NCBI GenBank assembly: GCA_904063045.1
Contig: CAJFCJ010000011.1
Span: forward strand, 992,001-1,056,000
Length of the DNA: 64,000 bases
Source: Dimorphilus gyrociliatus
Taxonomy: Eukaryota > Animalia > Annelida
Direction of reading: 5' to 3'
Below are positions 23,084 to 46,300 of this stretch, piece after piece. Position 1 is the first letter of the stretch; each line of letters begins with the position of its first letter. The notes under the pieces were generated by a model. That model did no database searches and had not been told where the DNA came from. It saw only the letters and a list, made by a program, of their open reading frames with translations. The translations under genes were made by a program, and so were the position numbers.

Positions 23084-26000
23084 ATGGGAGTTAAGGAAAG
23101 ACTTTGTATGAATCGATCTTCGAGAGAAGAACGGCAAAGTAATTGCGAGGAGACCCAAAACATCAATCAGGAAAATGTAGTAAACGAGGAGCCTGCTGAA
23201 CCTGGACGAATTAAATGGTCGTCGCCAACAGAATTTATGTTAACTTGCATTGGTTACAGCGTTGGTCTTGGAAATGTATGGAGGTTTCCTTACTTATGCT
23301 ATAAATCTGGAGGAGGTAAATTACATCTAAATATTCTTAATTCTTTACGCAAATTCTATAGTAAATCATCTTATAGATGTTTAATTATTTCTTTGCTAAT
23401 TACTCTTGACAATAATCTCTTTGTTAAGACAAAACAAATATAAATACACATAGTTAATATTATATTCACATACATGTAACTACAACCTCTATCACATCTT
23501 ATCTATTTGAATAAGCTATCATTTACTTTACATTTCTTTATTACAGGAGCCTTCCTTATTCCGTATATGATCATGATGGCTCTTATTGGTTGTCCAGGAT
23601 TATTCTTGGAATATTCATTTGGTCAATTTTGGGGAATTGGCGGATTAACTATATTCAAAAAAGTTTGCCCTTTATTTCAAGGTGGGTTTCTAATAATTTT
23701 TCTACAACAGCCTATTCAATTTTGTCCATGTGACGACACTTCACCATAGGCCTTTAACTTTTTCAAATAAGCATTTCGAGTATTTCTACCCATTTACCAT
23801 AAAATCTATATTAAGCATTTTTGAGGTGAAAACTATTGTAAAGCCTTTATGAATGAATATATCTTTCGCAGCTAACAAGTATAGCATACGTGAGGTCAAT
23901 GTCAGTAGAGCGTAATTCCTTATTTGAATTGAATGGAACTGTCTGATTTTGGCAAAAGCAAATAATTCAATTAGTTTCTCCCTTTCAAAAGCTGAGATTT
24001 GTCTCATTTTAGTAAAAGAATTCAATTAATATTTCTCTGATTCGTAAGCACAAGACTGAAACATGATACGAATAATTACGAAAGGTTTTCCTCTCTTTGT
24101 TTACATTAGCGGAAGACGACACACGAATATATGAATGATTATACGTCGTCCATTTTGACAAATAAGTTGATTCACTTCCTTCTCTAGTCACGGGAAAAAC
24201 AACAGTTAAAAGACTTCTTTACATTTCTTTTGAACTTGTAAATTATATCATAAAAAGTTCATTTCAATTTAAACATTGAAAATATGTCTGAAATTATATC
24301 AATGGAACGCTAAGGATTATGCTGTTTTCAATTTTGCACTGTTACTACAACATTGATTTATGTAGGTCAAAAGCCTTATTCTCTTTATAAAATGCACACC
24401 TCCCCTCTCGTATGCTTTAAAAGCTTAAAATATTCTTCTGAAGATCTTAAAGTGTCATCAAACATATTTTTTTTCGTCTAATCCTAGCTATATCCTTTTT
24501 TTTATTTAAATAATAACAGTAGATGTATTAATTTACAAAACCAAAATTACACTGTTTTATTGAGGCGGCTAAGTTCAATCATTTCATCCGGTTTTAATTT
24601 ACCATTGTTAAAACATGCCATTAAGTATAATCCTATAAATATTCGTTTTAACAGATTATTTCCGTTTTCCAAGATTATTTCTGCTTTGACCTTAAAACTG
24701 CGCGTTGGTTGGTTCTTTATTGCCTTTTTCAATGAATTGCTCACGTTATATGCCTCTAGGCAAATTACACGACACGTATTTGTCACCATGACACAGAATT
24801 TTAGTAAAGAGATTGTAAATTTTATTTTATTGACTAGGCAAGACAAAACGTTTTTATTTAGTAAGCTCGACACTATACTCCGCCGGCAAAAATATCAATA
24901 AATGCCAACACAACTGTTTAAATTAAAAATGACGTTTCAAAAAAAAAGAAGTATATACAGAATATTTTAATATATAAAAATGTATTAATTTTAACTGTTC
25001 CACATATTTCTGACTCAGAGATCATTTTTTGAGAACAATTTCTTTTTTATTTTCAATCACCTATTGTACATTTAGAAATTATTAACAGTGCTATTATTCA
25101 TGTATTTTAGCTGTAAAGGAAGCTACTTTCTAAAGAATATTAAATACGCTGTCTCGAATGAGAATATATACCCTCTTCTTTGTTTTATTAATCCTTGAAA
25201 AAGTTGCTTAGTTACAATATCGATTAGAGTTGTATACTCTTGAAGATCTTGTTCTGAATCGTTGAAACGTTTTGCCTCGTATTAATTTTTGTTACGCTTT
25301 TACAATCGTTCTCATATGCCCTAGCCAAATCAATAGTCTTTTACCCTTCCGTTAATCAATAGTCGACCTAGTGACCTATAAAAAGTCTCATTTTACAATG
25401 AAACCTAATTGAACTATACACTCATTTCGTTGATCAATGACTTTGGCCTATATAGACTATTGAATAGTAATAACTTTCGATTTTTTTAACTCGTCCTAAT
25501 CGTCTGCTCTTTGACGTAATCATGTATATATTCAATATAAACATATGTGACCTACTTATTGAGGGGGCGTTTCATCAATGCACCTTTTTACTACGTCTTA
25601 AATAAGACTCGTGTCACCTTATCAAATTAACAATCTTTTTCATCTATCTTTTACGACTTTTGTATAAGAATGTCCTATAATGGAGTATAGTATAGATGTC
25701 TTTTATTATATTTTTATTTAGTTTGTTGAAATATGATAAGGAATTTTTGAGAGAGCAAAAAAAGCCCCGTCAGATTTATGTGTAGTTGAGCAGGAGGGTG
25801 GGGGGAACTGTTACCGCCTTCGACAACAATATCAGCATATAATTTTTTCTTTACTGTATGATATTTTTAGATTCAGGTTAATAGGATTTCGGAATATTTC
25901 GAAGAATTTTTTAAACTTTATAGCAGACGAGCGAAGTAGAGTTTTTTTAGTTTGACAGAGAGTGGAAGAGATAGTGCATCGCACTTAAATTATCATGTAT

Positions 26001-29000
26001 TCTTTAGAGTAATTTTGTAAAATTCATGTAATTTAGCTTGTATAAAGCTTGGTTTTTCATAGCAAATACAGTTTATTTTGCTGGAATCACAAGGTTCACA
26101 GCTCCAGACGGGTCATTTAAGTGTCCTACTTAGAGTACTCAATTGCCAATATTAGTCTAGAACATGCACGTTCCAATCGTACTATTTGTTAGCGGTCTAA
26201 AACCTTGGCTTATACAGATATCTTTTTATTATTTATTTATCATGCTTTATCGATGTATTACAAAAAATTAATGTCTGGTGAATGTCTTACTCTCTGACCT
26301 ACTTTCCTATTCAAATATTTTTATTCTAACTTTTCATATAAAAAATTTAGAATATTTTTATTTTCATTACAGGAATCGGCCTATGCTATATGGTTTTAAA
26401 TGGTTTCGTGTGCATATACTATAACGTTATCATCGCCCTATCAATACACTACCTCTTTCGTTCATTTACAAGTGATCTACCATGGGGCAGTTGCGGAAAC
26501 GCATGGAATACTCCAAATTGCGGAGATCCAATCGCAAATATTACATATAATAACCAAATGAACAGCACGAACTTCACGACTAGTAGCCCAACAGAATTTG
26601 TTACCTCTACATATTCTCCAAATATGAATAAAACTGACAGAGTTAGCCCATCCAAGGAATATTGGGAAAGAAAATTGTTGGCTGTTACCAGCAGTCATTC
26701 CATTAGCAATTTAGGGAGTATAAGATGGGAATTATGTCTATGTTTACTAGCTGCTTGGGTAATCGTAGTCATATTTGTCAGCAGGGGTATCAAATCAACT
26801 GGAAAAGTTGCTTATTTTACTGCAACTTTCCCTTACCTCATGTTAACTGTTCTGGTTGTCAGGGGAGTCACCCTTAGAGGAGCTTCAGATGGAATCACTT
26901 TCTTTGTAATGCCACAATGGGAGAAGTTGCTATCTCCAGATATTTGGTTTAATGCTGCTACACAGCTATTTTACAGGTTTGTTAAAAAAATTCTCTTTTC
27001 ACCAGATCTAAAGTGCAGTTTTTTGTAACCTATCACTTCCTTTTTTAAGCTTAAGGAAAATATTTATTAATTTTTTTTATATATTGCATTCCATTGTCTT
27101 AGAATATAAACGTGCTAACCATATGATAGTTTTGTTCATATTGTTTTTTACTTATTTTAGGGAACTCAATACTCTAATCCATCTTGCATTTAGCACTTAA
27201 AAAAATACTCTCTAATATCCTGGAATATTTCTTCAATTAGGGAAAAGAATTATTAATCGCCATATAATTTTTAAAATTGTTCTTAAATGTAGATAAAATC
27301 CCAATATTTTCAAAAATTAAAGAAAACTACACATCGGAAGATAATCAATTATATTCAATCAAATTTTTTCTTCAGTACAAATATTGGATGGGGAGGAATG
27401 ATAACGATGGCTTCCTACAACGAGCGAAGTCATAACTGCTTTCGTGACGCAATTGTTATAAACTTTGTTTCTTTTTGTACTTCGCTGTACGCTGGATTTG
27501 CTGTTTTCTCTATCATTGGTTTTATGGCTACAGAAAGTGGACTTGACGTCGGAGTAAGATCAGGATTATCAGAATTTTCCACATATAATTTATTGAAATT
27601 AATATTTTTAGGATGTTATTCAGAGCGGACCTGAACTTGCATTCATTGTATACCCAAGAGCCCTTGCTCTTATGCCTTTGGCACCTATGTGGAGTGCGCT
27701 TTTCTTTTTTATGCTTTTCTTATTGGGAATTGGAAGTCAGGTTTGTACATTTTAAATTTAGTAGCGGTAAACAGTAATAACAAATTATCTAAAAAGCATA
27801 GATTTACTCAAAGAATTTTGAGCGCCGTCTAATTTTTTACTCAAAATACATAGGTATCAATTTATGACAAAGTTATTGCTGAGAAATTAATTTAATCATA
27901 TTAGATTTCGTATAGTTTAAAAGAGTTTTTTTTTTTTACAATAGCTATAATTTATATTATTTTTACATTGGCTATAGTATTTCAATAAGGTTATTTAGTA
28001 AAGTTAGTCTTACAAACTGTTAATTAAGGAGTTGTAAGCCAATTTTTATACCATAAACAAATTATTTATGAAAATTCGTTATTCTCAATGAATTAGCTTA
28101 ATGTCGTTCTCTTGTATAGAATAGATAGGTAGTAATGGTTCAATATGTACGCATCATACAAATTTTTACATGCAACCTTTATATCAATTGATAAGTGTGC
28201 AACACAGCAAACTATACAGGGGGAAAGTTGAGTTTCTTTTCTAAAACTTTGTATCGATTGAATGATAATCTCTGACGGAACTGTCAAAGTGAGCTAATTG
28301 ACTCAAGATCAAAATGAATATGTCATATACAAGATATATTGACATAAACTTTGCGGAAACTTTTGAAATTCTACTGAAAAACTACACAGTTAGAGGTTAA
28401 GAGAACAATCCACAAAAGCTTAGCAGATTTGTGAGACTATTAAAAGCGCTTAGTATTCATCGTGGCCAGTATTCCTTTCGTCATTGAGAATAAAGAATTT
28501 CCATGTATTTTAAGGTTGTGACAATATATTTGAGCAAATTCCAGGTCAGCCTTAATTTACAGTTAAAAAACTTAGCCTGACTTATTATATTAAGCATTTA
28601 ACTTAAAAATATATAATTGCACTAAACTTGGAGGTTAGTACACATTATACTTGTAGAGTATATTGACACTTCTATTGCACGCTCCTGCCTCTATGCTATT
28701 CTTTAAATTAATCTATTTTTCGTTCTACATCAAACTTTTCTTGCTGAATGTCCATAGTATAAATTAAGTTTGGGTTATAATATATCTGGCGTTGAAAGAA
28801 TTTTATTTAACCATATTAATATTGCTATATAATTTTTTAGACGCTTACATGGAATTATCTTTAAAAAATTTTAATATTTCTTATAGAATAGTTAATGCTA
28901 CAGCTTATTATAAAAGGTTTCTTTTATCTTACATCATTTTTTAATTTTATATCAAAAAGTTTTTATTTTTGCAATTATCAATTTAACTATTTAGTACTTT

Positions 29001-32000
29001 ATTACTTACTATAGATGAATACTAAAACCTTAAAAAATTATAGATATAATAAGCATGCATACTAAAATACTGTAAATTAAATTGTATTTATTTTATTATA
29101 TTAGCAATGTAGCTTCAAGCTCTGATTCTATTCTATTTATTACTCTATCTATCTGTCAATAACTAGTGGAGCAAGGGGAATTTTTGCACTATATTAATTA
29201 TATTTAATCACACAGAATCGTTTTGAAATAAAAATTCAAAACAGTTTAGAATAACAATATACCAAAATTTTTATATTTCATCAACAAGGCTTTTTATAAT
29301 TATAAAACTATCTGCTACTTTCGCCAAACCCCGATACAGATGGTGCTCATTGAAACTGTTGTTACTGGATTCGTCGATGAATTTCCTGCTCTTGGCAAAA
29401 CACCTTTAGCCCGCCTCGGAACGACAATAGGTTTTTGCATAGTTTTCTGCTTAGTTGCAATACCACAAACAACCCAGGTATTAGTCAATAGGAACAAGAA
29501 TCAGTAATTTTCTAATAACTGATAAAGGAAGCATTTTTCTCTTAAGAATGAGAGGATGAGCGTGACTGAACATTCATCTGTGTAAAGTTTCTATCTTTTG
29601 CTACTGTTTTTCGGCTACTTATTCATTAAGTTATTTTTGTTATCCACCATAGTTATTTCCTAAAAAGTCATCCCCTATACTCATCTAAAAATTCCCTATC
29701 AAGGCAGGAGTGTTGTAAAAGTATTTTCATAGTAGGAAATATATATTTTGCTTATTTACTTTTAAAGAAATTCTAAGCTAATAGGTTTAATTAGGTAATC
29801 CTTTCAGTAAGCGAGCAATAACGTATCAACTCGATATATAATTCGTTATTGAAGCTATTACCTAACACTGCTCCTCTCCTTAATCTTAGAAAATAATAGT
29901 ATCATTTTGCTTAGTGTTTAACTAAAAATGCATTTCGTATTAGCATGCTAAGAATATTGTGTTAGGCGTTGTTGTCACAATTCTTCAGATGGTTCAAGTA
30001 GAAACAGTGATGACCGGATTACGGGACGAATTTCCTCAATTTAACAGAACAAAAGTTCGCTATCTAGGAAATATCATCGTACTATGCACCGTGGGTTTCC
30101 TGATGGGTTTATCTTGTACAACTCAGGTTTCACTTTAACATTGACAATATATTTTCATTTTTCGAAATAGTCACACCTGTTTTCCTAAAGACAAATAGAG
30201 AGCTATTTCTTTCCCCCTAGTGCATGCTTATCCCTAGATTTTACTCTACACTCCCGTGTAAATTATTATTCTGGGCGGCGCTCTGAAAATGAAAGGATAA
30301 TTGCAGTGTTATATGAATTTTTCCACCTCAAATGAAAAATACTTCTTAATCTAGCTACTATGCTTATTTTTCTGATTGGAAAAGTTTCCTTATTCCCAAA
30401 CCAAATTTATGAAACAGAAAACTTCCGATAAAGAGCTCTTTAAAAGGAAGAAAATTACAAAAGTTACTTTTTATAAATAATCACTGCTGCAAAATAATTC
30501 TTATTAATAATTGATAACGAAAAATTCAAGAAGCGACTATAAACACATTTAGGCTTAAATTAAGTATTCAGTATAATTTTCAAAATCACATATTGAAAAG
30601 TATGCTTAATTGTCGAACATTTTATTATGTAGTCCTTTTTCATATAACGCAGATGGTAGGGTTGGAAACTGTTATGACTGGTATCACTGACGAATTTAAA
30701 ATAAAAATCTGGTGGAAACGGCTTTTGGCTACAGTTGTGGTTGCAGTCTGTATGTTTTTATGTGGTTTACCTCAAGTTACACAGGTTTGATAATATAAAT
30801 CTGTATAGTTCCCATAATTAATGATTATTTAGCTGCATTGATAATAATAGCTGATCAATCAATAATTAGCTTAAATTATATACCATAATATGCAATGGCT
30901 AGCTATACGTATAAGACATAATTTAGGAATATTTACTTAGAACGTATACAGATATATGAAAAAGCTTCTTTCATATATTGCTATACTTAATTATTCCTAA
31001 GATAATTGTACGTTGTTCCAAATTTTCTGCATTTATAACTATCAAATTCTATAAGGTTGATAGATTTTTAACAGAAAATAGCGTCCCAGTTTTAATGTTT
31101 AACCTTTTGATTTTGGTTTCCTGATTTATTCAACAAAACAATTAACAATCACTTTTATAAAAGCGTTGTATATTTGAAATGAATTTAAATCTGCAGGGGC
31201 AGTATACATAGTTATTACATCTATACAACGTGATATGCATCTTTACCTTTTCTATTTCTTATATATAAATTTATATATACATATATCTACTTGTATATAT
31301 GAATATATTATACATGTAATTTTTAAACCAAAGTCTCTCAACCATAGCCTCTTTGTTTGTTGTTAAGTAAATCGCTTCTTAATTTTCTCTATCGAGAAAT
31401 GCAGTGCTACATAAGTTTGCTTCCTTTCATACCGCTCGTCGACTATCTATTGTAATCAAGTTAATCAAGTGAATGATTGTGTAACTGCATGGCGAAAATG
31501 GCTGAACATAGATATGCTTTCCTTTAAACATTGTTTCATAAAAATTCTATCAATTCTTTTACTCTTGCATTAAATAGCAAAGACTGCATACTAATTATAT
31601 TCTTGAATGAGCTTCGGTTATGGGTTAATAAGATTATATACAATATATTTATTCATTTAAAGTATTTTGCTATTTGATTCACGAGCATAATTTTAGATGG
31701 AAAGTGTAAATTTGATATGAACGAACGCTTTTTTTCTATTTAGGGTGGGATGTTTGTGCTGTCACTGATTGACCATTACGCCGCCAGCTTTTCAGTATTG
31801 CTCATAGCTTTTCTTGAATTCATCATTATATACTGGATATATGGTGGAGCGCAATTTTCTGGAGATGTGAAGATTATGTTAGGTTCTCCTCCAGGTGTTT
31901 GGTGGAGGATATGTTGGGCTATTTTGTCACCTTTGGCTATTGTTTTCATTATTATCTTCAGTTTTATTAACTACAAAGGAGCAAAGTATGGTAGTTACAC

Positions 32001-32229
32001 TTATCCTACTTGGGCGGACTTTATTGGATGGTGTATTGCTTTGGCATCTTTCATACCTATTATCCCTATTGCTATTGTTAAACTCCTAAAGAGTTCTGGG
32101 TCCAACATATTTGAGAAATTGAAGTTCATCACTCGACCTCCCTGTGAAAGAGAAGTAGAGAGACGGCAAGATGTTGAGATGAGACAGGGACCTCTTTTAG
32201 AAGAAGCTCCCGGCGCGCTCGACGCCTAA
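23084..32229 (+). CDS. SLC6 Na+/Cl- coupled amino-acid transporter (glycine/proline transporter-like)
   Basis: Exons 23084-23315 ([18 protein letters not shown]), 23547-23681, 26373-26976, 27376-27553, 27612-27740 (LGIGSQ), one of 29340-29477/29989-30126/30653-30784, then 31744-32229. Gly at the SERT D98-equivalent position indicates an amino-acid rather than monoamine substrate. Confidence 0.95.
29340..29477 (+). CDS. SLC6 alternative exon A (TM8b-TM9)
   Basis: cag|ATG..CAG|gtatta, 138 nt: [46 protein letters not shown]. Confidence 0.85.
29989..30126 (+). CDS. SLC6 alternative exon B (TM8b-TM9)
   Basis: cag|ATG..CAG|gtttca, 138 nt: [46 protein letters not shown]. Confidence 0.85.
30653..30784 (+). 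CDS. SLC6 alternative exon C (TM8b-TM9)
   Basis: cag|ATG..CAG|gtttga, 132 nt: [44 protein letters not shown]. Confidence 0.85.
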
Positions 32230-34798: not shown

Positions 34799-35401
34799 TT
34801 AAGAAGATAGAAACTAAAACTGTTGATGAATGTATATAAAAGTTTTTACTTTCGATGTACAAAAACTATTAAAATCAATAAATTTTATTGAATTTTCAAA
34901 CTTTAAACCCTAAAATACAATCTTCAATTGATTTTTCTCTCTCTTAGTCATAGAAATATTTAAAGATAGCTACTCTTCCAAAATATTTCGAAGAGCAATC
35001 TTTTATATTACTAATTTAATCTATTAATTTTATAAGAGATCTTCTATTCAAGAAATGCATATCACTACTGCAAAGAAACAAAAAACCAATAATTCACCTT
35101 TAACATTTTAACAATTTAAAGAAAATATAAGACTTGAATGTAATAGATTTACTTTATCTTTTTTAGTCTTTGTTTGTTTTTAAAGAATTTACTTTCGATC
35201 TTTTTTAAAAATATTCATATTCTTTAAATAGGCTAGGTAACCAGTTTTTTTTAGTTGGAAAGGATTATCCATACATCTTGTGCCAAGTATCAAATGTATT
35301 GATCAAGCATCTATAAATTTCACGTGTACTTTAACACATAGGCATTTTACTCTTGATACTTGCTTTCATTCTGTTAAGTTTGAACGTTGAGAAATTGAAT
35401 A

Positions 35402-36658
35402 ATGAAAATTCAGCTTAAGTACTTAATATTTGTAGCTTTGTTAGTTTTTTGTTCATGCGAAGATGAAAAAAAACCAAAGAAGCATGACGATCATCCTCCA
35501 ATAAAGGAAGCTCACTATGATCATGGTGAACACAATGAAGATTATGACCACCAAGCTGTCTTAGGTAATTTAATTTTTTCTAATAATGAATTATTTGAAG
35601 GTTGTTACATTCAAATACACTTCTTGTAGGTTCTGAACAAGACGCCGAAGAATTTTCTAAATTGGACGCTGCTGAAGCTAAAGATAGATTAGAGAGTCTT
35701 GCCAAGGAAAAAATTGATTTGAATAAAGATCACATCATTGATGAAAATGAATTGGCAAATCATATCCTAAAATCATTCGTTAAGTTGGATGACGCCGAGG
35801 TAGTAATCTCTTTGTAAGCTATTAAAAACGTTTTCTTATAATGTGTCGATTGCAATAGGCTCAGGTTAGATTTGGAGAAACTGATGCCGATTCTGATGAT
35901 ATTCTCACTTGGAAAGAATATATGCAAGAAACCTACGGGATGAGTGAAGAAGAACTTCAGGAACAAGCTAAAACAGACAAAGACAAGAAAAATATGTTAA
36001 ATGTGAGTAATTTCTATATTAAATACTTCAAGTATATTTATTTAATGCAACATAATTATTATTTCCTTTAGGATATTCTTATCGAAAAGTCAAGATTCTT
36101 TTTGGCTGACAGAAACAAGGATCAAACTTTGGACAGAAAAGAATTTAACGCTTTTTACCATCCATTTAATTACGAATATATGCACGAAAATGAAGTGAGA
36201 CTTTTTAGTTAATAAGCCATAATTCATTCATTCTTATTAATCATAATTTTCCATTTCTAGATTAACAATACTTTCAAATTTCATGACAAAAATAGTGATG
36301 GTTTCATTACATTCAACGAATACTCTGATGAGAATGCTGATAAAGAGACAGCCGATTACGATAAAGAACACTTTAAACAATACGACAAAGACAGCAATGG
36401 AAAATTGGACAAAAAGGTAAGATATCAGATGTTAGAGCACGTTTTGGGAAGGAGTAGTTAATTTATATTTTTCATCAGGAAGTAGAAAAGTGGGTTATTC
36501 CCGATCACGGACAATTGGCTATTGATGAAGCTAAGCATCTCATCAGTGAAACAGACGCTGATAAAGATGGTAAACTCACTATAGATGAAATTAGAGATCA
36601 ACATTCACTCTGGGTTGGAAGTCAACATATTTCTTTACACGATCCAGAAGAGTTGTAA
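35402..36658 (+). CDS. CREC-family EF-hand ER protein (reticulocalbin-2/calumenin-like)
   Basis: Exons 35402-35564, 35630-35799, 35859-36002, 36072-36194, 36261-36416, 36479-36658. Signal peptide, EHNEDYDHQAVLG motif, six EF-hands (e.g. DKNSDGFITFNEY), C-terminal HDPEEL retrieval-like signal. Confidence 0.92.
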
Positions 36659-40357: not shown

Positions 40358-43300
40358 ATGGGAGGTGCAAAAAAATTTTCTGCCGAAAGTAAAAAATTTG
40401 CAGATGAAACGTCATTTCATGGAATACGTTACCTGTCTTCAAAAGATATTAACATCTTTCGAAAGTAAGTAACACTTTTAATATATAATTATTTCTTATT
40501 CTATTAAAGTTTTTAATTAATTCTAGAATAATATGGCTTCTAATAGTTCTCTGTTGTTTTACTGTTTTTGTGTACGTTATGGTAATTAGATTAAAACGGT
40601 ATTATACTTATCCGAAAACAGTTAATGTTGAAGTTAATTTCGTGAACGAGCTACCGTTTCCTAAAATGGTCATTTGCAATACTAATTTATTCAAATCCTC
40701 TTCTCTAGCTGAGAGTGGATTATATGATGTAATTCAAGACAGCTTAGTAAATCCCAATGACGATGATGTAGCTAAAAAAGGTTGTAGTTTATCTTATCAA
40801 CAATCAATTTTCTTATCAAATATATGGATTTTATAGCATGTAATACCTTTACGTATTATCGTCAGTGTTTACCTGACACTTTTTTTTTCAACGACACTGT
40901 GATGTCGAGAACTACAAGCTTCAAAGTAGTATCGCTAACATCATGCCAAAGTCTGTGTAACGGTTTATACAGCTCAACTTGTACAAGCGTCATTTATCAT
41001 AAAATTAATAGAATATGCTATCTGACCCAACTCGACGTCTCACAGAACATTTCACAATTTCTTTCATATAGTAATAAATGTTCTTTTGAATATTATTTTT
41101 TCCGCCGAAAGAGATGCTTAGGTGATATTTAAATTAACATAATTCCATTCATAAACCTTATAATCTGCTTTTTTTCTGAAAAAAAAATACAGTGCAAAGC
41201 GTTCGCTGCAACCGTAAAACAGATAAATGTGAATTAACAACGAGTCATATATGGGATAACATTGTACATCCAGATATCTCTGCTACTAACAGAATCGGTA
41301 AAACTACTTTTAAAAGCTTTAAATAATCTGATCATTGCTTTTTTTTAAATATAATTAGCCAATAGTTACTTTGAATTAGTTCAACACAGGATAAATGTTA
41401 ACCCAAAAGCCTATCTAATTACTCCTTTTATCGATATGAGAAATAAATGTTTAAGATTTTTCTTTAAATACTCTGCACAGACTGAAAGTATCTTTTCGGA
41501 CGAGTCAAGCTTTACTGTAAACATTAAATAATATTTGATAATGAGCATAGTTTTAATTTATGATTATCTTTCAAAGACTTATCTTGCCTCTGAAATCGGA
41601 AGTGAAATTAACATATCTTATTTTAGGATTACTAAAGGTTACCAACTTTCTTTTAAATAGTATAGTCGTCTTTTTAACAAAAGAATTCTTTTTTAAATAC
41701 AAACTCCCTAATTTTGTAGAATATCAAAATGATCGTTTTAATGTATTTTTTCTAAATCTATACGAGAGTTTGAAAGATTTGGAGCAGTTGATATTTAAAC
41801 TTCGCATTGAAATAAATTTAAAATTACCGGGTTTAAAGATCACTTTTGGTGAACTCTTAATACAAAATTGCGACAAATTTCGTAAGAATATTTCGGATTA
41901 AAAATTATCTGGAACTTATATATTTTTCATTCGAAATAGTTGATAATTGTAAGACGACGACAGAAGGTTTTCTTTATGCTGGCAATAATGATAAATCAAT
42001 TTCTGGTAAAAGCTGCTATCCAATTACCAAAAAGTAAGTTTTTTTGAAGAGTTTAATATCTTTAATTGAGCTCGTAATTTAATTCAAACCATAATTCTTT
42101 CTTAGTTTATTAATAGAAGACACAACTTTACCATATGGAACTCATTGCATTAATAATGGTGCAGAAAAATTGCCGATTTGTCTAGTTTCCTATAATAACT
42201 CTGGTATAGTATTAACTTTATATGTTTAGTTATTGACAAACAATTGAATCTTCGATTTCACAAGATGACAAATTAGCCCAATTTGAAAGATATGAGTATT
42301 GTGACATATCCTTTTGTGGTGAGACATTCAATAGGTAACTTTTTAAAAAAAAAGAATAAAGCCATATTTTAAAGCCTGTAAAGAAGAAGAATTTCAATGC
42401 GAAAATAAGAAATGTATACCTAAGTTTTTAACCTGTAATGGCGTTAACGATTGCGAGTCAGGATCGGACGAATCAAATAACTGTGGTATGTCGATAATAT
42501 GTGCTATTCAACTTTCCCGAAAACTAATATTTTATATCTCTAAAGAACGTCTTCAAAATATCGAATGTAACTTTGAAAAATCATATATGTGCGGATATAT
42601 CACATTATATGCTCTTTCTGCTACTCGGATTGTTCTGCAAAGTGGTGGATCACCCAACTCTCTGAATCGTATCGGCCCTCTAGCTGACCATACTTTTAAA
42701 AGTGACTTTGGTCATTATGGCCTATTCGATTCAACTCTTTTGCCTAAAGGAAGCCGTTTAGTAATTAAAAGTCCAAAACATTTTGTCCATGATAGAGACA
42801 ATTGTTTGAGAATAATGGTAACGTTACCGTATAGTGAAGAAAACATATTCTCTCCCTATGGCATAAGAGTATTACTAATTGATGCAAAAGGTTCGATATC
42901 TCATCTAATATTTCAAAATTTAGAAAGAAAACAGACCTTATCTTTTCATCAGCTTCAGATTCTTTTTATTATTCTCAAGTGGGAAATTTTCACAATATAA
43001 CTTATAACAAATGGACGGCCATTGATATACCTATCACTACTATAAGAAAGGATATCGCCTTCCAAATAGAATTTACTTCTTATAGAATGAATTTATCAGA
43101 TATAGGTATTGATGATATAAAAATTCATTCTTCATCATGTGCATTTGCTCACAGCAATATAAACATAGAGCAAACACTTGATTGTCAATCAGATAAGGTA
43201 TTTAAATGTGAAAGACCTTTAAAGACATGTATTGATAAAAAATACATGTGTGATGGAATTGCTCATTGTATAGATGAATCAGATGAATTTAATGAAATAT

Positions 43301-46300
43301 GTGGTAATTATTATATCTGATAAATAAAAATTAATAGATAATATATTAATTTCAATAGAAACTCAAAAGAATATTTCCTGCACCTTTGGTGATTCTAGTT
43401 CGTATTTATGCGGATATAGACAGAGATCATCATATATGGGCTATAGATGGGAAAAATCTGATGAAATATTAAAATTCAATCCATTCGAAATAACCGGAAA
43501 TGGAAAACCAAAAACTGTTAAAGCTGCTCTTATTTCTCCTCGTCAAAATTTCTCTTCAGGAGATTATTGCGTTGAATTTACATATGAGAGTAATACTCTT
43601 CTTTCACTTTACAAGGAAACTGACTTAGATACTATGCTACTATTTAAACTAAATCAAGAGTATGGATTTTTCAAAATGGACTCTGTTGAATTTACAGTTG
43701 ATCATACTCTTTCCCTTAACCTTGTTTTCCTAATAGAAGCTGATGATATTGAAAGAAAAAAGCCTCTCTCCAGTTTTAAATCAATCGACATTTTCAACAC
43801 CAAATGTTCAATTGTCTTCTATAGGAAGTGTAATTATCTTTCCAAGTTTTTTGGATACATAAATTTATACGCTATACTAATTAATTCTATTATTATTAGT
43901 CAGTAACATCTTGTTACACAACCCTCTAAATTGCACATTTATGAATATGAGTGATTGCCATTTTCAAGATGTATCTTCAGGCGTTAATAAGTGGAATCAT
44001 ATCTGTAATAAAATATGCCACTTAGAAGGTTACCTTGACCACCATAGAAATTCAATCAAAGTTGCTTTTATACTAAAGAAATATGATTCATCTTGCATAA
44101 AAATCAAACTCTATTCAAAAATTTTGGAAAAAATTTCTTTTATTAAAGAGCCTATAGGCGAATTTGGCCTTGAAATTAATACTCTTAACCTTAATACCTC
44201 AAGTAATAAGACTAAGAAATTTCTTGTTTTGAGGTATACAAATATACAATATCATAAAAACTGTTCTTTAACTTTTACTTCTCAAATAATTAGGTATTCG
44301 ACATCGTATACTCTATTCATTCCAGCAAATAACACTCAAAATGGGCTTACTATTGAAGCTTTTGTCAATGGATCAGTTGGCGAAGTTTTCATTGAACACA
44401 TTGAACAGATAGAAGGCATTTGTACGTTTCACTCTTTTAATGTTCAACGATATTGATTAAAATAATTATTTTATACAAATAACAACTTTCAAATTAATTG
44501 CATAACTAGCACAAAATACTAAATCTTCTAAAAAAATAGGCGAAGCGGAAAATCCACCTTCAGTCGTTTTTAGAGCTTACCCACCCCCTGCTACATCAAT
44601 TGCACTCCCTTACTATTTGAATAAACTAAAATATAATGTAAATAGTACTATGAGTTTAAAGCCAAGCTCTAAAAAAGAAATGAGAGAAGACTTCCTGCAA
44701 ACAATAACTTTGGAAACATTTAGTGAGACTTTTAATCACAACAGAACTTCATCTCTATTACAGTTTGTTTCATTACATTAAGCCTGCAAAAAATATTATT
44801 TTAGTTTGTTGTTTTCATAGTTGTTCTTGGAAGGGTAAACCATGTCAAGAAAACATGATACAAACGCATTTTTCGAATATAGGAGACTGCTTTACATTTA
44901 ATTATCAACATAATTTCATGGTTTATCAAGCTGGAACAGGACATGGTTTAAAATTATTAGTTGACATAGAAACGTACGATTTTCTTCCAAATATTAAAAC
45001 GCAAATGGGTATAATTGTATCAGCGATTCCCCTTGATGATATTCACTTAATTCAAGATAAAGGCTATGCAATTTTAACTGGAACAAATTCACTTCTTAAA
45101 ATTAAGATAGATGAAGTAAGAATTGTTCTAATATATTTAGACGTAGTAATAATAACAATTATCTTTATGATTCTTTTCAAGATACAAAGTCTTTCTGAAC
45201 CTTACGGAAGTTGTACCGACAAACACTTACAGTACTACTTAAACTCTACATATACATCAAATAAGTGTGTGACACAATGCCATACACAAATGATAGAAGA
45301 AGCGTGCGATTGTAAACCTTCATATGTTTCTGGTTCTAAACGAGATTGTAATTTACTAGAATATCTACTGTGCATTTATCCTCTTATTGGTTTGTTTTTA
45401 TTATTAAAAGACGTTGACAAATGAACATTAAACTTTTTACCTTAGAGAAGAGAGTAAAACCAACATATTGCAAATGTTCTAGTCCATGTAAAACAACAGT
45501 GTATGGAATGGAGTTGTCATCATTAAGTTTAACTTCAGATAACCTTCGTCTCTTGCTGGACGATAAACTTAATTTTGTCCAGAGAAAGTACTCCAATGCT
45601 ATAAACATCAAGTTTAGATTTACGCCGAAATTATTCAATTCAACGATAACGTCGTTTTCATTATTAACTACATATCTTGATAAGAATGATGAGTATATAA
45701 ATAAAAAGCTGAAAAAGGAATATTCTCCCTTTTATCTGGCTGTAGAAAGTTTTTTTGTAATTCTCGAGCCCATCAAATATGATATAACAGAGAAGCTATG
45801 GGATTATAGTAGTATATATATATATATATATATCTTTTTTTGTTTATTTTTATTTATTACATAGTATTCTTTAAAAATATAAATTTCTTTCATTCAGCTT
45901 TCATCGAACAGAAATATCTAAATATGATCGACAAGCCAATCTTTTTAGTAATTCAAAGTTGTTCTACAACTCTTGAAAGTTTATTGTTCATTAAAAGAGA
46001 ACTTTTGAAAAATTCATATGCTTTAACTGAAGATTTTAACTTGAACACTCAGGATATTTATAACAATTTATTACGAGTAATCAAAGTTATATCTGGATTC
46101 AGTACAGATGTAAACGAAGAAATAGTAAATGCCACTGAATTTGACTTTACGTTGTCCTACATTAACGATCAGAGAGTTAAGTTTTTTTCTATCTACTATG
46201 ATGTTGGATTTGTTTTGAATCGACGTTGTTATGATGATTTAGTTCATTTATCGAGCAATTTAACACGTTTTATCAGAATTATTGAACAATTGGACAAACA

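Follow-up and report, generated by a model that had tools for sequence, protein, structure and literature searches.

Three tandemly duplicated, probably mutually exclusive exons in the membrane core of an annelid SLC6 transporter

RESULTS

An SLC6 transporter gene of Dimorphilus gyrociliatus carries three tandem copies of one exon

The window analyzed here is a 64,000-nucleotide (nt) stretch of the genome of the annelid Dimorphilus gyrociliatus (GenBank assembly GCA_904063045.1, contig CAJFCJ010000011.1, positions 992,001 to 1,056,000 of the forward strand); positions are counted from its first letter unless another sequence is named. It contains a transporter gene of the SLC6 family (Pfam SNF, PF00209) in which three homologous exons, designated A, B, and C, lie in tandem between a constitutive fifth exon (e5) and the last exon (Table 1). 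A sequence-only reading of this DNA had proposed that A, B, and C are paralogous, stop-free, equal in phase, and probably mutually exclusive in their splicing. Translation and inspection of the splice borders bore out the structural part of this proposal. All three exons are phase 0/0 and open throughout, with borders of the form cag/ATGGT...CAG/gt, and splicing A, B, or C singly into the gene gives frames of 633, 633, and 631 amino acids (aa), respectively, each with one terminal stop. The copies are 41 to 46% identical in protein and approximately 55% identical in DNA; as homologous neighbors of similar length and equal phase, they have the features of tandemly duplicated exons. No fourth copy was found when each exon was compared with the whole window by tblastn, which returned only its two sisters (E values of 1e-8 to 3e-4).

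The four introns of the cluster measure 1,599, 511, 526, and 959 nt, as the sequence-only reading had given them. That reading had also described them as far longer than the 50- to 70-nt introns typical of the region. One 58-nt intron, confirmed by RNA, fits this description, and the open segments of a neighboring EF-hand gene appear to lie approximately 50 to 70 nt apart; the other introns of the transporter gene itself, at 231, 2,691, and 399 nt, do not.

TABLE 1 Features of the transporter gene and of its exon cluster in the window
Feature	Position	Strand	Description and evidence
SLC6/SNF transporter gene, seven exons	23084-32229	+	Spliced frames, Pfam SNF, RNA joints
e1	23084-23315	+	
e2	23547-23681	+	
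e3	26373-26976	+	Pfam SNF 83-260, E 6e-63
e4	27376-27553	+	
e5, constitutive	27612-27740	+	Extracellular loop 4 and first half of transmembrane segment (TM) 8; ends ...LGIGSQ; Pfam SNF 321-363
Exon A, alternative	29340-29477	+	138 nt, 46 aa, Leu at residue 3; RNA joints on both sides
Exon B, alternative	29989-30126	+	138 nt, 46 aa, Gln at residue 3; intact in L001; no RNA junction in D. gyrociliatus
Exon C, alternative	30653-30784	+	132 nt, 44 aa, Gly at residue 3; RNA joints on both sides
Last exon	31744-32229	+	TM10 to TM12 and C-terminal tail, stop at 32227-32229; Pfam SNF 408-523, E 2e-32; acceptor for A and C
Stretch upstream of B	29950-29988	+	Includes polypyrimidine tract and acceptor; 12- and 28-nt blocks identical in L001
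Island I1	27804-27830	+	27 nt identical in L001; complementary to I8
Island I4	28675-28692	+	18 nt identical in L001; complementary to I6
Island I5, downstream of A	29519-29536	+	18 nt identical in L001; complementary to I9
Island I6	29701-29717	+	17 nt identical in L001; candidate partner of I4, alternatively of I8
Island I8, between B and C	30275-30301	+	11- and 14-nt blocks identical in L001; candidate hub for I1, I6, or I9
Island I9, last intron	31417-31429	+	13 nt identical in L001; putative docking site, with I5 and I8 as partners

L001 is a contig of a related species (see text).

Each copy is predicted to encode TM8b, intracellular loop 4, and TM9

The core of the encoded protein matches the SNF profile, and e1 bears a motif of 10 residues. 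Exons B and C each correspond to profile positions 364 to 407, exactly filling the gap between e5 and the last exon, and exon A aligns with the same stretch of the glycine transporter GlyT2 as do B and C. Alignments of e5 with creatine, glycine, and taurine transporters (E values of 4e-15 to 1e-12) end directly before the segments of solved SLC6 structures that each alternative exon matches on its own (GlyT2 580-623, PROT 404-443, and TauT 405-448). In an AlphaFold model of an orthologue, P0166, built on an alignment of 35 homologues (predicted local distance difference test score [pLDDT] of 85, predicted template modeling score [pTM] of 0.84), a helix at residues 404 to 438 is cut midway by the exon border at 423/424 and is followed by a loop at 439 to 442 and a second helix at 443 to 465. 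In this model, each alternative exon is the cytoplasmic half of TM8 together with intracellular loop 4 and TM9; the profile, the solved structures, and the model all confirm the assignment to TM8b-TM9 made in the sequence-only reading.

Foldseek matched the P0166 model, which has the 12-TM LeuT fold, to GlyT2, PROT, GlyT1, TauT, DAT, and SERT with template modeling scores of approximately 0.8/0.9, and the best structural matches were GlyT2, PROT, and GlyT1. By sequence, the predicted transporter belongs to the glycine/proline/taurine-like branch of SLC6. It shares the fold of vertebrate GlyT1, GlyT2, and PROT, which among known transporters match it best in sequence as well as in structure, but is only 40 to 46% identical to them and falls in a separate annelid orthogroup; its nearest named homologues, 56 to 66% identical, come from the annelids Capitella, Owenia, Lamellibrachia, and Helobdella. 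Like the glycine transporters, the protein has Trp in the GWGG motif of TM6, and Gly takes the place of GlyT2 D577, matching the LGLGTQ of GlyT1; on these grounds, the substrate may reasonably be guessed to be a small amino acid.

Exons A and C are used mutually exclusively

RNA evidence from D. gyrociliatus comes from one run (X2), in the form of assembled contigs, which lose rare forms. This run contains RNA, as the 58-nt intron that separates e4 from e5 is spliced out; exon depth is four to six times intron depth. Its contigs contain the joints 27740>29340 (e5 to A) and 29477>31744 (A to last exon), as well as 27740>30653 (e5 to C) and 30784>31744 (C to last exon). The joint from C to the last exon also occurs in a marine metatranscriptome (X1), where it derives from a close relative approximately 98% identical. 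Joints from A to B, from B to C, from A to C, or from e5 to the last exon were absent from the contigs of both X2 and X1, including in a second pass at 80% likeness and a 1% share. Exons A and C are used mutually exclusively, as had been proposed, and both are abundant, with C apparently the major form.

The proposal of exclusive use fared less well for exon B, which has no junction in the sole RNA run. The X2 contigs contain neither a joint from e5 to B nor one from B to the last exon, a single contig passes without interruption through B from 29449 to 30679, and a search with exon B alone returned no further RNA run containing it. Intron depths in X2 are 209, 357, and 179, the middle value being approximately the sum of the outer two, and we infer that these depths fit partly spliced intermediates of an A path and a C path without inclusion of B. 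These observations weigh against a three-way choice and would be expected if only A and C were functional in D. gyrociliatus, with B a silent relic and the switch two-way. In the X2 sample, exon B is at most a minor form. Because contigs lose rare forms, its absence speaks only to abundance, and occasional use of B is compatible with the data.

The X1 contigs also match intron sequence of the cluster, at 27979-28166 and 30335-30535, with approximately 93 to 95% identity; a close relative of the host is present in the X1 community, and pre-mRNA or DNA of this relative is within the library.

All three exons, including B, are under purifying selection

For comparison we used L001, a 20.5-kb Logan contig of a related species (two further contigs, L002 and L003, are identical to it). 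L001 is syntenic with the window, with the SNF gene, an EF-hand gene, and a DEG/ENaC gene in the same order, and it holds orthologues of A, B, and C with the same order, lengths, and splice sites and with conserved intron lengths. Synonymous sites are near saturation across the three exons (proportion of synonymous differences [pS], 0.38 to 0.64). Against this background, A is 87% identical in protein with a ratio of nonsynonymous to synonymous change (dN/dS) of 0.11 (one-sided Fisher P = 4e-6), B has a pS of 0.64, a proportion of nonsynonymous differences (pN) of 0.16, and a dN/dS of 0.12 (P = 5e-7), and C has a dN/dS of 0.055 (P = 2e-6). All three exons are under purifying selection. Long-term selection, which the sequence-only reading had suggested from the divergence of the intact copies, is confirmed both by these ratios (0.05 to 0.12) and by the presence of the cluster in Capitella, Lamellibrachia, and Owenia.

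The same comparison makes it improbable that B is a silent relic. Both species keep B intact and its splice sites canonical despite a synonymous difference of 64%, and its dN/dS is low. The 23 nt 5' of its acceptor are invariant between the two species, within a 28-nt identical block that reaches 5 nt into the exon. When matched with the corresponding part of other SLC6 proteins, B also scores above A and C, and B-type exons are expressed in other annelids (see below). By these features of its sequence, B does not look like a decaying pseudo-exon, and its conservation suggests that it is used in D. gyrociliatus.

Three-exon clusters occur across annelids

The sequence-only reading had pointed to other annelid and mollusc SLC6 loci as the places to look for the cluster, and three copies, ordered alike, were found in each of three annelid genera. 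They begin with MVLIET, MVQVET, and MVDVET in Capitella (the third is 44 aa long, and the first 16 residues of copy 1 equal those of exon A), with MVIMET, MVQVET, and MVDLET in Lamellibrachia, and with MVQFET, MVDFET, and MVGFET in Owenia, where 64 nt separate copies two and three. Helobdella has a single copy, beginning MVCVET. Splice sites are canonical in every copy of these four genera.

Transcripts and annotations of orthologues also attest to alternative use. The Owenia proteins CAH1785348.1 and CAH1785349.1 in the public annotation differ solely in this exon. In another annelid, the transcript contigs P0169, with an A-type exon, and P0177, with a B-type exon, match almost completely outside it. 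Other transcripts carry a B-type exon (P0181) or a C-type exon (P0166, from a relative, P0167, and P0175). Every full-length transcript or annotated isoform of an orthologue carries exactly one copy.

In a tree of the exon peptides, A-types group across species, including Capitella (support 93/97), C-types group with each other (84/88), and B-types are unresolved. By sequence, the cluster predates at least the split between D. gyrociliatus and Capitella. It probably predates the annelid radiation, because Owenia, too, has three copies.

Several observations on individual loci accompany this survey. In Owenia fusiformis (L007, 20866-21843), the annotated isoforms use copies two and three, and copy one, of the Gln type, is unannotated; the 64-nt gap between copies two and three is short enough for steric exclusion. 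In Lamellibrachia satsuma (L008, 42999-53050), the public model ends after e5 and a second model begins at the B-type exon, a split of the annotation that is due to the exon cluster; the 6.3-kb intron before the first copy contains an open reading frame for a Mutator-like transposase on the minus strand. In Helobdella robusta (L005, 6892-7029), the lone exon has Cys at position 3, the donor CAA/gt, and introns of approximately 80 to 110 nt; in leeches the cluster has either been lost or was never completed. A strict-motif scan of 150 family representatives found no protein with two copies of the segment. With a looser look, P0176 (MetaClust UPI00078A481B), a predicted SLC6 protein, shows two tandem segment copies at approximately residues 489 to 575 (FATSET...MCTR and FAISET...MTTK), followed by a second gene. 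Judged from its sequence, it is probably an unrecognized mutually exclusive pair in another lineage.

Together, these results favor a reading in which an annelid SLC6 transporter gene carries three mutually exclusive exons that arose by tandem duplication, and to this reading we assign a probability of roughly 0.8; exactly one of A, B, and C would be joined between e5 and the last exon. That they are instead ordinary cassette exons, free to be combined or all skipped, is very improbable: all exon lengths are multiples of three, which would keep combinations in frame, and contig data may miss rare forms, but no joint between copies or past all of them was seen, orthologous transcripts and isoforms carry one copy each, and inclusion of two copies would presumably insert an extra half-helix and helix and reverse the topology of TM10 to TM12.

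The exon types differ at a residue aligned with the substrate site

In alignments to full-length human GlyT2, position 3 of the exon corresponds to T582 and position 13 to D592. T582, in TM8, is among the predicted glycine-site residues of GlyT2, and D592 pairs with R191 in the intracellular gate (PMC4919009). All copies retain two residues required by every SLC6 transporter, the Asp of the DEF motif at position 13 and Glu at position 5, which hardly vary across the family alignment. Position 3 follows exon type, consistently across species: A has Leu (Ile in Lamellibrachia), B has Gln (leeches have Cys), and C has either Gly or Asp. Vertebrate GlyT1, like exon A, has Leu at this position (FCL...). 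We take the position 3 column to be that of LeuT I359, SERT G442, and DAT G426, and the column after it presumably holds the "subsite B" residue S426 of dDAT. Nearby TM8 positions, the loop, and TM9 also vary by exon type.

Because residue 3, which aligns with the substrate pocket, is type specific, and its TM8 neighbors, the loop, and TM9 vary as well, one gene probably yields three transporters differing in substrate preference or kinetics. The isoforms might instead differ mainly through loop 4 and TM9, in regulation, lipid or partner contacts, or trafficking, and not in substrate selectivity. Most of the divergence between exon types sits in the loop and TM9, and exon C has a distinctive basic, Trp-rich loop. 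We hold this alternative to be possible but the weaker bet, since residue 3 is type specific, conserved across annelids, and aligned with a substrate-site residue, and since the first 16 residues of the A-type exon are the same in D. gyrociliatus and Capitella.

Conserved intron islands could pair to enforce exclusive splicing

The introns of the cluster in the window and in L001, the two species to which this comparison applies, share about ten collinear islands of 13 to 28 identical bases; they are otherwise 52 to 61% identical in a forced alignment. Several islands are complementary to one another (Table 1), and the candidate duplexes would loop out different exons (Table 2).

TABLE 2 Candidate duplexes between intron islands
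Duplex	Energy in window (kcal/mol)	Energy in L001 (kcal/mol)	Exons that would be looped out
I4:I6	-26.7	-25.0	A
I1:I8	-24.7	-24.0	A and B
I6:I8	-20.1	-17.0	B
I5:I9	-14.4	-18.0	B and C
I8:I9	-15.2	-20.6	C

When the islands were shuffled, at least three pairs at -20 kcal/mol or below arose in 0 of 300 trials, and the best pair was matched in 1% of shuffles; reverse-complement controls of the islands reached -15.3 kcal/mol at most. In unbiased scans, I4:I6 came top for the window and second for L001, and I1:I8 ranked third in both. An extension of the I1:I8 helix has bases changed on both arms between the species with pairing kept, the sole possible two-sided change.

We consider competing long-range RNA pairing the most likely mechanism of exclusivity, at somewhat better than even odds. 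Pairing of I1 with I8 would loop out A and B and favor C, pairing of I5 with I9 would loop out B and C and favor A, and I4:I6, if formed jointly with I8:I9, would leave B as the favored exon by looping out A and C. The rarity of B could follow from its need for both of the last two duplexes.

Several results weigh against this mechanism. In single-sequence scans, the best duplex energies are barely above those of shuffled-intron controls. The pairing arms are almost invariant over the two species, with hardly any covariation, and in the window I5:I9 and I8:I9 lie within the null range. At greater distance, the islands of the window were absent when searched for in Capitella, Owenia, Lamellibrachia, and Helobdella, and long-range duplex candidates in Capitella did not exceed shuffled controls. 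Exon choice might instead be set mainly by tissue-specific splicing factors that bind the islands, a tentative alternative. The invariance of the arms could then reflect protein binding, and both the near-shuffled energies of the single-sequence scans and the absence of the islands from distant annelids would be in keeping with it. Binding by protein accounts less well for the greater mutual complementarity of the islands relative to their shuffled or reverse-complement versions, for the same two pairs ranking in the top three of both species, and for an I1:I8 extension that differs on both arms yet still pairs.

Other candidate mechanisms were rejected. Enforcement by nonsense-mediated decay is ruled out, as the exons are stop-free multiples of three and double inclusion stays in frame. 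Steric hindrance is ruled out by inter-copy introns of 511 and 526 nt, and U12-type incompatibility is ruled out by donors that are ordinary GT without a U12 consensus.

In a simple scan of the cluster for inverted repeats, most of the pairs were AT rich and at chance level. The first cluster intron contains a 24-nt inverted repeat (28068-28091 and 28481-28504) that is 92% complementary; its 3' arm lies in the L001-conserved island I3, and its 5' arm was not found conserved.

Elsewhere at the locus, intron 2 of the transporter gene (23682-26372; 2,691 nt, approximately 2.9 kb in L001) contains long open stretches, such as one of 137 codons at 24488-24898. The downstream EF-hand and DEG/ENaC (ASC) genes lie at 35399-36068 and approximately 40837-44600 in the window and at 14005-20055 in L001.

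DISCUSSION

Tandem exons in Drosophila Dscam1 (exons 4, 6, and 9), 14-3-3zeta, and Mhc are reported, in work by Graveley in 2005 and by Yang et al. in 2011, to be chosen by RNA pairing between a docking site and selector sequences. Like clusters of the Dscam1 type, the cluster described here consists of homologous exons in tandem that agree in phase and nearly in length, of which probably one is chosen per transcript, and it has conserved intron elements near the variable exons with complementary counterparts in the flanking introns. Unlike them, it belongs to Annelida and to another gene family, and its candidate pairings come from both sides in place of a single docking site. PGRP-LC is a related case (PMC6191721).

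The closest parallel in logic is coq-2, whose exons 6a and 6e form a mutually exclusive pair in nematodes, flatworms, annelids, and molluscs (PMC7434440). In both genes, the exon swaps a few residues in the core of the protein, and in coq-2 these are invariant residues, two of which change substrate choice. The cases differ in that ours is a transporter with three exons, whereas coq-2 is an enzyme with two, and the function of the coq-2 exons has been demonstrated genetically. Duplicated exons that encode a TM segment of a transport protein, and that are ancient with isoforms under selection, also occur in mrp-1, which has four mutually exclusive exons in Caenorhabditis elegans (PMC4165533) and an independent origin of such exons in annelids (PMC7434440), and in human SLC25A3 (exons 3A and 3B) and CACNA1C (PMC5740500, PMC9741552). 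None of these genes belongs to SLC6. Mutually exclusive exons are already known from annelids in coq-2, Mhc, and mrp-1 (PMC7434440, PMC3912159).

Within SLC6, the sequence-only reading knew of no described cluster at this position. Our full-text literature searches likewise returned no mutually exclusive SLC6 exon cluster; the Drosophila exome survey of Hatje and Kollmar lay outside their scope, and an insect case is possible. Two of the Owenia isoforms already appear in public annotation, and the cluster is to that extent not wholly unseen. Known vertebrate GlyT isoforms differ at their termini and not in the membrane core.

The boldest form of the interpretation joins several of these elements: an annelid-wide three-way switch, older than the split of Owenia from other annelids, in which a pocket residue would be exchanged to give three specificities under the control of a two-sided RNA-pairing network, the first on record in a spiralian. 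Taken as a whole, we regard this combination as doubtful. What draws attention to the cluster is its age, its placement at a substrate-site position of a much-studied family, and the compact candidate RNA pairings in a spiralian.

There are practical consequences. The cluster disrupts gene models, as seen in the split Lamellibrachia gene and the unannotated Owenia exon. With compact introns and few complementary islands, the cluster may offer a tractable non-arthropod model for RNA pairing and mutually exclusive splicing.

The substrate range of vertebrate SLC6 transporters diversifies through gene duplication. The annelid gene suggests an alternative route to diversity, in which one gene holds three interchangeable half-TM8/TM9 modules that have been kept across the phylum. 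Because these modules differ at a position lining the substrate site, they would amount to natural chimeras from which TM8's role in setting selectivity within the glycine/proline/taurine branch of the family could be learned.

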